Below are positions 45,327 to 60,581 of a DNA stretch of 64,000 bases, piece after piece. A program made the translations under genes and the position numbers. The first letter of the stretch is position 1. Every line of letters starts with the position of its first letter. Source of the stretch: Pavona decussata (lineage: Eukaryota); contig CDRNST010000334.1 of the NCBI GenBank assembly GCA_977016875.1, forward strand, positions 3,596,001-3,660,000, given 5' to 3'. The notes below the pieces were generated by a model. That model was not told the DNA's origin and made no database searches. It was given only the letters and a program-made list of their open reading frames with translations.

Positions 45327-47112
45327 ATGACGGCTGTGAAGGAACTGCTAACTCTTTTCTTGGTCTTCCATTTTTGTTTGGCCAAAAGGTAAGCTGTTTT
45401 CTTTGTACCACTGTACCACTCAGTTGTGGCTCTGGTTATTTCGTAGGATATGTGGTCTGGGAAAACCTTGAAACGGGACAAATCTAAATTCCAGCGCATT
45501 TAAAGTGTAGGCTCTTTCCGAGAACCAAGCAAATCCATAGCCTTCTACTCGCGATGTGTGGGACCTTTTGCGCGCTTTCCACGAATAATCCGAAAAATGA
45601 AAAAAGCTCAAAACGGATCGAAATGCAACAAACTGAGTTGACCTTTTAGAGGCTACTTACTACTCAACAGAAATGTAACAAAAACATCATATGCCCCACA
45701 CCCTGACTCAACAACTGCAACACAACACTGAACGTCGGCCATACAGCAACCACTGTACTGGAACACCTAAACCATCCAACCACTTAACTTTCAATTAGAC
45801 CAAAAATGTTTCAGTTTTGATATATTCGATAGAATATATCAAAGTACGAAAATTTTGCGGTAGTTTTACTTTTGTGGATTGGCGATTTTTTGTGGTTTGC
45901 GGGAACGAATTTTTGCGGTTCGAGATGACTGAAATTTCTGCTGAGGACTAATTTTTCCGATGCTCTGTTCAAGCAGCGGGACATTTAAGTGGAAGAAACC
46001 TTAACATTTTCAACTTTTATTGTACGGTGTGTTCGGCCTGCTATGCCAAACTATGCCCTCAGTACTGTAAGGCAATGAGACATTCTCAGTCGATAACAAT
46101 TAATAACCCTCTTGTTCAGATGAAGTTCACTGTTTCAATAATACGGTTTGCCACGACCAGTATCACCGTATATTATTTTACAAGAAAGCAGTATGGATGT
46201 TTGAATTACCGTAGCTGAAACCTTTCTAGGCATACAGAGGGGTTTTCGAGTGAAAGATGAAGCATACAACTTTGAGACCTAACTGGGTGCGGTCTGCTAA
46301 AATTCCAAACTATGCCCTACTGTAAGGCAATGAGACAGACTTCAGTCGATAACAATAATACTCTTGTTCAGATGAAGTTTCAAGAATTGAAATCAGAAGA
46401 GCGTGAGAGGATCCGCCCTGGTCGGAAATACATTTTGAGGCGTAGCAAATATCTTCCCTTGAAAACGATATCACTGATAGTATGAATTGTTTTCGTCCTC
46501 TACTGGTATATATATGTAGTTTTCCAAGCCGATGACTAGAAACGGTCGTAAAAATAAACGTGGTGCTCGCGAATCAATCGAAGACGAAGACGTCTTGAAC
46601 GAAGCGAAGCGAGTCAACATGGCGGCAAAAAATGAAACGAAAACACCCAACAACGTACCTCCCGAGCCTAGTCTGGCCGAGTTAAAGGACATGTTGGCCG
46701 ATATACAAGTCAAAGTAACTGGAATACAGCACGAGAACCTAAAACTGAAGGAAGAAATCGCCCAATTTAAGGAGGCTTTTCAATCGGAGAAACAGGATTT
46801 GCAGAAGATGAAATCTACACTTGAAGCTTCCATGAATGCAAATCCAGCGCTTAAAGAAGAACTTGATGTCACGAAGAAAAAGCTGGAAGATGAAATCGAA
46901 GAGTCGAAACGCTTAAGCGAAGAACTGTATGACCTAGAACAATATACGAGGAAAAAACTCGCTCGAAATTCATGGAGTTTTTTTTTGTATTTTAATAGTT
47001 TTTATTCCATTTTATTTAGTTACAGATTCACAGATGAAAACGATACTTGTACAGAACAAACACACACACACCTACAAAGGACAGTAATTAGGGAGCCACG
47101 ACGCGTTATTAA

Positions 47113-47149
<37 letters not shown>

Positions 47150-59100: not shown

Positions 59101-60581
59101 CCAGGCTCTCCACTGTCAGTTGAAGTCCTGTACCATTTATGAATCTTCACTCAGTTTACCATCTCAATATTATTGTCCTCCAGTCCAGACTCTCTACTGT
59201 CAGTTGAAGTCCTGTACCATTTATGAATCTTCATTTAGTTTACCATCTCAATATTATTGTCCTCCAGTCCAGACTCTCTACTGTCAGTTGAAGTCCTGTA
59301 CCATTTATGAATCTTCATTCAGTTTACCATCTTAATATTATTGTCCTCCAGTCCAGACTCTCCACTGTCAGTTGTACTCCTGTACCATTTGTGAATCTTC
59401 ATTCAGTTTACCATCTCTGTTGTCCCCCAGTCCAGGCTCTCCACTGTCGGTTGAAGTCCTGTACCATTTGTAAATCTTCATTCAGTTTACCATCTCTGTT
59501 GTCCTCCAGTCCAGACTCTCCACTGTCAGTTGAAGTCCTGTACCATTTATGAATCTTCACTCAGTTTACCATCTCAATATTATTGTCCTCCAGTCCAGAC
59601 TCTCTACTGTCAGTTGAAGTCCTGTACCATTTATGAATCTTCATTCAGTTTACCATCTTAATATTATTGTCCTCCAGTCCAGACTCTCCACTGTCAGTTG
59701 TACTCCTGTACCATTTGTGAATATTCATTCACTTTACCATCTCTGTTGTCCTCCAGTCCAGACTCTCCACTGTCAGTTGAAGCCCTGTACCATTTATGAA
59801 TCTTCATTCAGTTTACCATCTCTGTTGTCCCCCAGTCCAGACTCTTCACTGTCAGTTGAAGTCCTGTACCATTTGTAAATCTTCATTCAGTTTACCATCT
59901 CTGTTGTTCTCCAGTCCAGACTCTCCACTGTCAGTTGAAGTCCTGTACCATTTGTGAATCTTCATTCAGTGTACCATCTCTGTTGTCCTCCAGTCCAGAC
60001 TCTCCACTGTCAGTTGAAGTACTGTACCATTTGTGAATCTTCATTCAGTTTACCATCTCTGTTGTCCTCCAGTCCAGGCTCTCCACTGTCAGTTGAAGTC
60101 CTGTACCATTTTTGAATCTTCATTCAGTTTACCATCTCTGTTTTCCCCCAGTCCAGACTCTTCACTGTCAGTTGAAGTCCTTTACCATTTATAAATCTTT
60201 ATTCAGTTTACTATCTCTGTTGTCCTCCAGTCTAGGCTCTCCACTGTCAGTTGAAGTCCTGTACCATTTATGAATCTTCATTCAGTTTACCATCTCTGTT
60301 GTCCTCCAGTCCAGACTCTTCAATGATTGTCAGTTGTAGTCATGTACCATTTATTAATCTTCATTCAGTTTACCATTTCTGTTGTCCTCCAGTCCAACCT
60401 CTCCACTCTCCAATTGTTAATCATTGTTCGTGCCAATTTATTACTCACAGGGATTCGAAGCATTCCAACGATTGTGAATTGTTCGTGTGTGACTCCTTAC
60501 TGCTACCGGGTGTCAAACTTTGAGGCATTTTCTGAACAGGCATTTACTGATGCTAACGGAAAAACAGCGACCAAGACTAAG
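45327..60581 (+). CDS. pnhd: Secreted tandem cystine-knot protein, Pinhead-like; 3' end not securely resolved
   Basis: Exons 45327-45388, 55541-55608, 56586-56641, 57124-57388, 60451-60581 are GT-AG and in phase (194 codons): signal peptide MTAVKELLTLFLVFHFCLAKRAAA, then GCERRDKYFEIGCDKGNIVSLNIGVC...CLP...TIEAC; CRRLPHFVLFYPGTAYSRRIDIGVCGGRC...CKP...TPNGIRSIPTIVNCSC; CYRVSNFEAFSE...ANGKTATKTK. Family call from recalled motifs; the exon 1 link across a 10-kb intron is inferred from phase. Confidence 0.72.
46532..47745 (+). mobile_element. Disrupted ORF1 of a CR1/L2-type non-LTR retrotransposon
   Basis: Coiled coil ending in DLEQYTRK(N)SLEI (46532-46975) and C-terminal NENLT.YRR...SVWTMNGKVSVKT...VRI...DL (47565-47740), interrupted by other sequence. 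Confidence 0.7.
47180..47335 (-). mobile_element. Tx1/L1-type RT fragment
   Basis: SPGNDGVTAEFYKAFW..VGDLM..SLNYAYDHGELSNTQKQAIITL. Confidence 0.75.
48708..49360. repeat. Dispersed repeat with a long internal palindrome
   Basis: TAAATAAACCCCTT...GCTGGTATGTTGGCTGATAATGTCC is mirrored by GGACATTATCAGCCGACATACCAGC...AAGGGGTTTATTTA (48708-48892). Confidence 0.55.
49615..52000 (+). mobile_element. Degenerate Tx1/L1-type retrotransposon ORF2 (RT to C-terminal zinc region), split by an insert at ~50220-51030
   Basis: KIRQSDNVKGI...VKLSQFADDTNLF...FGEISSLRLNVEK; FQFLWKNKRNKIRR; HRIVVTKKELHKFGI...CIYCGE; many frameshifts. Confidence 0.8.
54293..54364 (+). pseudogene. Duplicated copy of Pinhead-like exon 2 (pseudo-exon)
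   Basis: Same TTACTTAG acceptor and GTGAGT donor as 55541-55608 but 4 nt longer; joined to exon 1 it reaches TAA after 7 codons. Confidence 0.6.
54485..55488. mobile_element. Unclassified TIR element with TGT...ACA ends and subterminal GCAAAATGTAA repeats
   Basis: TGTTACGCAGCAAAATGTAATACTAACGCAAAA / TTTTGCGTTAGTATTACATTTTGCGGCGTAACA; contains a nested pogo-type MITE at ~54909-55089. Confidence 0.7.
57851..60410 (+). repeat. Intronic minisatellite, 79/84-bp units, ~32 copies, with a 647-bp higher-order repeat
   Basis: Unit gaatcttcattcagtttaccatctctgttgtcctccagtccagactctccactgtcagttgaagtcctgtaccatttat; the 84-bp variant carries caatattattg; identical ORFs at 58250 and 58897 are 647 bp apart. 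Confidence 0.95.

Follow-up and report, generated by a model that had tools for sequence, protein, structure and literature searches.

A transcribed seven-exon gene for a predicted Pinhead-family protein with three tandem cystine knots in the stony coral Pavona decussata

The literature treats Pinhead (Pnhd) as a chordate-centred regulator of ADMP. Xenopus Pnhd binds Admp directly, antagonises it and is not processed by furin (PMC8188501), and zebrafish Pinhead has been reported as a secreted BMP-like ligand (PMC6989304). According to the part of the latter report that cites Imai et al. (2012), pinhead lies directly upstream of admp in a tandem arrangement from arthropods to vertebrates (PMC6989304). 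A review from 2024 covering BMP signalling across Cnidaria and Bilateria places Pinhead among extracellular regulators that are known ‘especially in chordates’, with no mention of a cnidarian copy (PMC11226491), and our literature searches found no description of Pinhead in cnidarians. Here we describe a Pinhead-like gene in a 64,000-nucleotide (nt) stretch of the genome of the stony coral Pavona decussata, namely positions 3596001-3660000 of contig C334 in an assembly of 602 Mb (hereafter the window). We consider it probable that this is an intact, transcribed gene of seven exons, and that its product is a secreted three-knot member of a coral clade of the Pinhead family that would tune BMP-type signalling.

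The gene extends over about 19 kb, from window position 45327 to 385 nt past the window end, and its first intron measures 10 kb. The predicted product has 255 amino acids (aa) and three tandem cystine-knot domains. All seven exons are open in one reading frame, and the splice sites are canonical. The exons are listed below; exon 7 lies in L002, the next 10 kb past the window end.

45327..45388, + strand: exon 1, with the ATG and a signal-peptide-like leader ending in HFCLAK, in phase 2 and followed by GT (read from the sequence)
55541..55608, + strand: exon 2, with the first Cys of knot 1 (..HHGCERRDKYFEIGC), placed by the sequence, an RNA joint and a match to the coral homologue P0062
56586..56641, + strand: exon 3, with NIGVC of knot 1, where the second Cys of CxGxC is missing; sequence and RNA joints on both sides
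57124..57388, + strand: exon 4, with the remainder of knot 1 and most of knot 2 as far as TPNG; sequence, RNA joint and homology
60451..60581, + strand: exon 5, with CxC of knot 2 and then CYRV, which opens knot 3; sequence and RNA overhang
62106..62164, + strand: exon 6, with LVDMGKC..C of knot 3, from phase 0 to phase 2, with AG/GT borders
L002:259-385: exon 7, which completes knot 3 and has its stop after CSC-HYPRN, 385 nt beyond the window

An earlier reading of this stretch (the original prediction) had proposed five in-phase exons of 194 codons. Our manual model of exons 1-5 from the sequence comprises 582 nt and 194 codons, has GT..AG at all borders and agreeing phases, and reproduces those exons in every coordinate, border and phase. 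The last exon, which the same prediction had expected beyond the 64 kb, is exon 7, with exon 6 still inside the window. The joints between exons 5 and 6 and between exons 6 and 7 are placed by homology and splice signals; those upstream have RNA as well. Exon 1 encodes a short polar start and then a hydrophobic run of 13 residues ending in CLAK, and the leader end FCLAK(R) is also kept in the coral homologues P0062 and P0155. One additional Cys at the end of exon 2 is absent from P0062. Exon 5 gave a tblastn match (E 1e-14), and exon 6 was matched by tblastn with P0062, P0007 and the Acropora protein P0008.

RNA contigs of four public runs, from four studies, were compared with positions 55400-57700. 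The runs count as RNA because their contigs are spliced; the RNA label is itself a guess. Each run provided one contig, 889-1866 nt long, which joins 55608 to 56586 and 56641 to 57124 with GT..AG and continues past 57388 with an overhang identical to the first 30 nt of exon 5. The contig of run X7 (964 nt, depth 162) has the end of exon 1 as its overhang before exon 2. The five exons that had been linked on paper are therefore joined by spliced RNA, with the exon 1 joint found in run X7. Contig depths range from 20 to 160 across samples of the four studies, and exon 4 is present in runs from several studies of one organism. Within exons, the RNA contigs differ only at 57324 (T>C), a synonymous change.

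The family assignment starts from exon 4 (88 aa), which was searched against 1.8 billion representative proteins. The search found 61 proteins at E <= 0.001, ranging from 5e-47 to 5e-4; for a single exon this similarity is far beyond chance. Full-length matches whose sequences were read are 240-420 aa long and all have one three-knot architecture, in which the unit C..R..DVGxCxGxC..C.P..GPNG..I..CxC occurs three times and a CYR after each unit opens the next. The coral gene contains the tandem repeats that had been recognised in it originally, with C..[DN]IG.C, CxGxC, PNG and CxC followed by CYR. Members of the family occur in stony corals (Porites, Acropora, Stylophora, Pocillopora, Oculina), protostomes (insects, crustaceans, a springtail, Lingula, Lineus), deuterostomes (Amphiura, Glandiceps, Branchiostoma, Styela, hagfish, a teleost) and sponges (two Oscarella species). 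All close relatives of this gene are from stony corals. Exon 4 matched protostome members at 2e-9 and weaker and chordate members from Styela (3e-5), Branchiostoma (5e-4) and Eptatretus (‘Im:7138239’, 5e-4).

In the reciprocal direction, a profile of 15 members, all bilaterian, was run over the whole genome. Its top match is exon 4 of this gene (E 8e-17, 68.7 bits), and the other matches are two loci on contig C60 (2e-14 and 3e-12), giving three loci in total. Reciprocal homology with the bilaterian family, as originally proposed, is thus borne out from both ends. No member is named pinhead in the source databases; the hagfish and teleost entries carry ‘Im:7138239’. Gene order identifies the family as Pinhead. 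In the teleost Coilia (the Im:7138239 entry), in Branchiostoma and in the nemertean Lineus, the next gene downstream of the family member is on the same strand and encodes TGFb_propeptide and TGF_beta domains, in the order published for pinhead and admp (PMC6989304). The Coilia neighbour has 391 aa and is BMP-class, with BMP2 and BMP3 as its best solved relatives (1e-39). Homology that is significant in both search directions supports the conclusion that the coral gene encodes a predicted Pinhead-family protein. Since corals and sponges both have members, the Pinhead family is older than the cnidarian-bilaterian split.

A different assignment would make the product a generic cystine-knot protein of the DAN, CTCK or glycoprotein-hormone type, with no specific kinship to Pinhead. 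UniProt labels some members merely ‘CTCK domain-containing’, and the structural evidence is spread across many knot families. For structure work we used residues 66-322 of P0062, which is the closest among the natural full-length homologues (61% identity in the exon 4 region). The AlphaFold2 model from a 34-row alignment is nearly all beta, with a mean pLDDT of 85 and a pTM of 0.71. A Foldseek search of the model against the PDB returned nothing at E <= 0.001; its weak rows were knot growth factors throughout. VIA-align placed Gremlin-1 first (Z 6.5), with Norrin, Artemin, NBL1, TGF-beta2 and SOST at Z 5.5-6.5 and further rows for GDNF, PDGF, VEGF, Noggin and the VWF CTCK domain. Its 41 rows are nearly all cystine-knot factors and cover residues 24-163, 95-165 and 161-257; a Z below 8 is not strong alone, and the weight rests on the uniform list of knot factors. 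By language-model features, P0062 is nearest to arthropod and chordate clusters of 300-320 aa, followed by the DAN, CTCK and glycoprotein-hormone families. In Pfam, the exon translations were unmatched at E up to 10 and P0062, P0057 and P0152 at E up to 1, and neither DAN (PF03045) nor PF00007 (Cys_knot/CTCK) was matched in those scans; Pfam has no model of the three-knot (Pinhead) family. The Pfam result, together with the three-knot architecture and CYR links of every full-length match read and the agreement of searches in both directions, makes a generic knot protein very unlikely.

The three knots of the coral protein are not equal. Knot 1 has neither the second Cys of CxGxC nor the second Cys of CxC. 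In a canonical knot these are cysteines III and VI, which pair with each other; their absence therefore means the loss of one of three knot disulfides, as the original prediction had it, and leaves knots 2 and 3 as the only two that can be complete. Both cysteines are absent from every aligned protein of one coral clade, group A, and are present in the bilaterian and sponge members. Because the loss is common to the whole clade, it is an old clade trait and not a defect of this copy. In a maximum-likelihood tree of 33 rows, which included the three genes of this genome as single-exon rows, exon 4 falls within group A (100/99) as sister to P0062. Group A contains Porites, Acropora, Stylophora and further corals, and among the sequences here consists of stony corals only. 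A second coral group, group B (Pocillopora, Oculina), forms a separate, long-branched clade. The two C60 genes form a pair (97/87) that excludes the window gene. The tree leaves its deep nodes open, and a claim of one-to-one orthology to bilaterian pinhead cannot rest on it.

Besides the seven exons, the locus has two exon-like features and a large tandem repeat:

48171..48247, + strand: exon 1b, an alternative 5' exon seen in RNA of runs X1, X2 and X5 as overhangs ahead of exon 2
54293..54364, + strand: exon 2', a diverged duplicate of exon 2, found by tblastn with P0062, by DNA alignment and in the sequence
57851..60407, no strand: minisatellite of 79 bp x 31.7 copies with 90% matches (Tandem Repeats Finder)

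In runs X1, X2 and X5, the overhang before exon 2 is not the end of exon 1 and belongs to an exon ending at 48247. The overhangs map to 48216-48245 with one mismatch; the 3' end at 48247 is certain, and the 5' end lies at least 77 nt upstream. Exon 1b contains no ATG in phase with the main open reading frame (ORF), so the transcripts of these three runs may not encode the secreted protein. Exon 2' has 72 nt, 4 nt more than exon 2, and contains a stop when read in the frame of exon 1. One 42-nt contig of run X5 seems to join it to exon 2, which is weak evidence. Exon 1b and exon 2' may represent unproductive or regulatory isoforms.

The minisatellite occupies most of intron 4, ends 44 nt before exon 5 and has strong local GC and AT skew. 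The first intron contains ORFs at 46532-47185 and 49650-50173, which comprise a 217-aa coiled-coil-like ORF and retroelement-like fragments; these are probably inserted transposons, to which the intron owes its size.

Other exon structures were tried and rejected. A four-exon model (182 aa) that skips exon 2 through an acceptor at 56554 was set aside, as exon 2 has a counterpart in P0062 and the spliced RNA enters at 56586. A mini-exon at 56789-56837 (..NCHCV..) in intron 3 is out of phase and unsupported by RNA. The in-frame TDNGGQ just 5' of exon 4 has no AG acceptor, and the RNA joint is at 57124; the protein match P0001 reads through this intron (TDNGGQ) in a related coral.

Could the gene be a decaying or non-functional paralogue? 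The disulfide missing from knot 1, the in-frame stop of exon 2', the non-coding 5' exon variant, the minisatellite of 2.5 kb and the long, repeat-rich introns would all fit. We find this hardly credible for a gene that has seven exons open in frame with canonical splice sites and is expressed in four studies, whose cysteine loss is clade-wide, hence old and tolerated, and whose only exonic variant is synonymous. An intact gene is the better account.

The two further Pinhead-like genes of this genome, modelled in part, are located on C60 at ~662.7-665.7 kb (+) and 678.1-675.5 kb (-), on either side of a TGF-beta gene at 670,098-670,883 (+). The product of the latter has nine Cys in its mature domain, and the best solved relatives are TGF-beta1, 2 and 3 (E ~1e-49, against 1e-13 for BMP2). 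The nine cysteines and this similarity indicate a ligand like TGF-beta sensu stricto, not ADMP. With ~25 TGF-beta loci in 602 Mb, the chance of finding one within 10 kb is below 0.1% by rough estimate, and the C60 linkage is therefore unlikely to be accidental. A BMP2/4-like gene (L005) is also present on C60, at 783.7 kb, ~105 kb beyond the Pinhead-like pair.

Elsewhere in the genome, divergent TGF-beta-domain frames of ~200 aa form arrays with all copies of an array on one strand, at C270:218000-555000 (at least 10 copies), C183:28000-65000 (2 copies) and C331:1539000-1573000 (3 copies). These arrays look like a lineage-specific expansion.

The window gene itself has no such neighbour. A scan of the whole genome with PF00019 gave 34 matches; the only one on C334, at 3,202,001, is weak (41 bits) and ~440 kb away, and no TGF-beta domain was found near the gene. 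The coral gene nearest to the Coilia pinhead-neighbour is L006 on C274 (50% identity, with PRGYNA and KPTNHATVQ motifs), an ADMP-like gene, and profile searches of the genome found no Pinhead-like match on C274. Within 10 kb, no TGF-beta neighbour was found for the group A genes of Porites lobata and Stylophora, a group B gene of Pocillopora or the Oscarella gene. The next recognisable gene downstream of the window gene encodes a rhodopsin-type G-protein-coupled receptor (GPCR; 7tm_1, E 1e-24) at L002:9465-9998, on the same strand and ~9 kb past the stop. In Porites lobata, a 7tm_1 gene lies 3 kb downstream of the group A gene; a GPCR gene downstream in both corals indicates conserved microsynteny.

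These data bear on the strongest form of the original prediction, in which the gene would be a one-to-one pinhead orthologue within a conserved Pinhead-ADMP axis-patterning module older than the cnidarian-bilaterian split. Exon 4 is the best genome match of the bilaterian profile, corals and sponges have the family, and the genome has in L006 an ADMP-like gene 50% identical to the fish gene adjacent to pinhead. Against this stand three paralogues and the deep nodes left open by the tree, the C60 paralogues that retain all knot cysteines of which this clade lost two, the distance of ~440 kb to the nearest TGF-beta domain, an ADMP-like gene on a contig with no Pinhead-like match, and the group A genes of Porites and Stylophora, also without a TGF-beta neighbour. 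We therefore regard the orthologue-and-module account as unlikely. Homology was shown in both searches and one-to-one orthology was not; the age of the family held, and an ancestral Pinhead-ADMP module was not demonstrated. The neighbouring admp or TGF-beta gene that had been anticipated is not there. Its absence is a feature of the locus, and lowers the orthology and module claims, not the claim of family membership. In Ciona, pinhead and admp reportedly exclude each other's expression in cis (‘seesaw’). As the coral gene is not in tandem with admp, such cis-acting mutual exclusion cannot apply here.

One possible history, which we put forward tentatively and with more doubt than confidence, is that Pinhead is ancient in metazoans, being present as far out as homoscleromorph sponges, and was linked to a gene for a TGF-beta-superfamily ligand before the cnidarian-bilaterian split. 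Bilaterians would have kept the tandem with admp; corals would have a pair around a gene like TGF-beta sensu stricto and an unlinked lineage without the III-VI disulfide, maybe with another ligand specificity.

How might the protein work? It would be secreted and act outside the cell, where it may bind a ligand of the TGF-beta superfamily, most plausibly a BMP-class or ADMP-like one. By analogy with chordate Pinhead, Gremlin, NBL1, sclerostin and Norrin, such binding would tune BMP-type signalling. We suggest a ligand trap because chordate Pinhead and the nearest knot folds work so, with Gremlin and NBL1 binding BMPs. A predicted complex of mature P0062 with two mature domains of coral ADMP-like protein scored 0.08 and has no weight either way.

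Instead of trapping a ligand, this Pinhead-family member might itself signal, as a BMP-like ligand or by way of a receptor tyrosine kinase. The zebrafish report of a secreted BMP-like ligand (PMC6989304) points this way, and the Xenopus paper cites a proposal by Ossipova et al. 2020 that Pnhd works in concert with FGF, Nodal and BMP signalling during mesoderm development (PMC8188501). Several structural neighbours (Norrin, Artemin, GDNF, PDGF and VEGF) are ligands of receptors. In the sponge Oscarella lobularis (OX382164.1; L039, 10001-16065), the gene for the family member P0023 is followed 0.9 kb downstream, on the same strand, by one that encodes an Ig-domain protein tyrosine kinase of 743 aa. 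Given the published proposals that link Pnhd to the FGF pathway, this linkage is suggestive; it is a single case. The Xenopus protein, which is not furin-processed and binds Admp directly (PMC8188501), speaks for a trap. A signalling role seems rather unlikely, though less so than a conserved module.

The preferred reading, a secreted three-knot Pinhead member of a coral clade that would tune BMP-type signalling, also has evidence weighing against it. Knot 1 is degenerate, and exon 2 adds an extra unpaired Cys. Three of the four assembled transcripts begin with exon 1b, so the RNA output may be partly non-coding. The link of the database name im:7138239 to pnhd, of which it would be an old zebrafish name, was not confirmed by a literature look-up. 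Finally, the published mechanisms disagree, with Pinhead described as an Admp antagonist (PMC8188501) and as a BMP-like ligand (PMC6989304).

The coral proteins are already public as ‘uncharacterized’, and what is new here is their naming and evolutionary placement, not a type of molecule. The expressed coral members and the sponge relatives shift the origin of a family seen as chordate-centred to before the cnidarian-bilaterian split, and research on the cnidarian BMP axis gains a concrete candidate for an extracellular regulator. With no admp linkage at this locus, an ancestral origin of the cis-regulatory ‘seesaw’ cannot be taken for granted.

Compared with bilaterian Pinhead, the coral protein is similar in length (~250-340 aa) and in its three tandem knots with DVGxCxGxC, GPNG and CxC followed by CYR. 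It differs in that its gene is not adjacent to admp, its knot 1 lacks the Cys III-VI pair, its knot 3 has a shorter loop and fewer extra cysteines, and it belongs to a separate, well-supported clade that here contains only corals. The group A genes of Porites lobata (CAH3126894.1), Acropora millepora (LOC114972091) and Stylophora pistillata (LOC111328534) belong to the same clade and have the same cysteine pattern. Several members share the leader end FCLAK, and Porites shares the downstream GPCR gene. Identity over exon 4 is 40-62%, and in the Pavona copy the first intron is much longer than in these genes and exon 2 encodes one more Cys. The C60 paralogues are of the same family, but in them knot 1 still ends in an intact CxC, and a gene like TGF-beta sensu stricto lies between the two. 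Gremlin-1, NBL1, sclerostin and Norrin are the best single-domain fold matches (Z 5.5-6.5) and, as secreted CTCK-type knots, bind extracellular ligands or receptors. Those proteins have one knot, whereas the coral protein has three, and the likeness to them is one of fold, with no sequence-family match; by sequence, the coral protein belongs with Pinhead.

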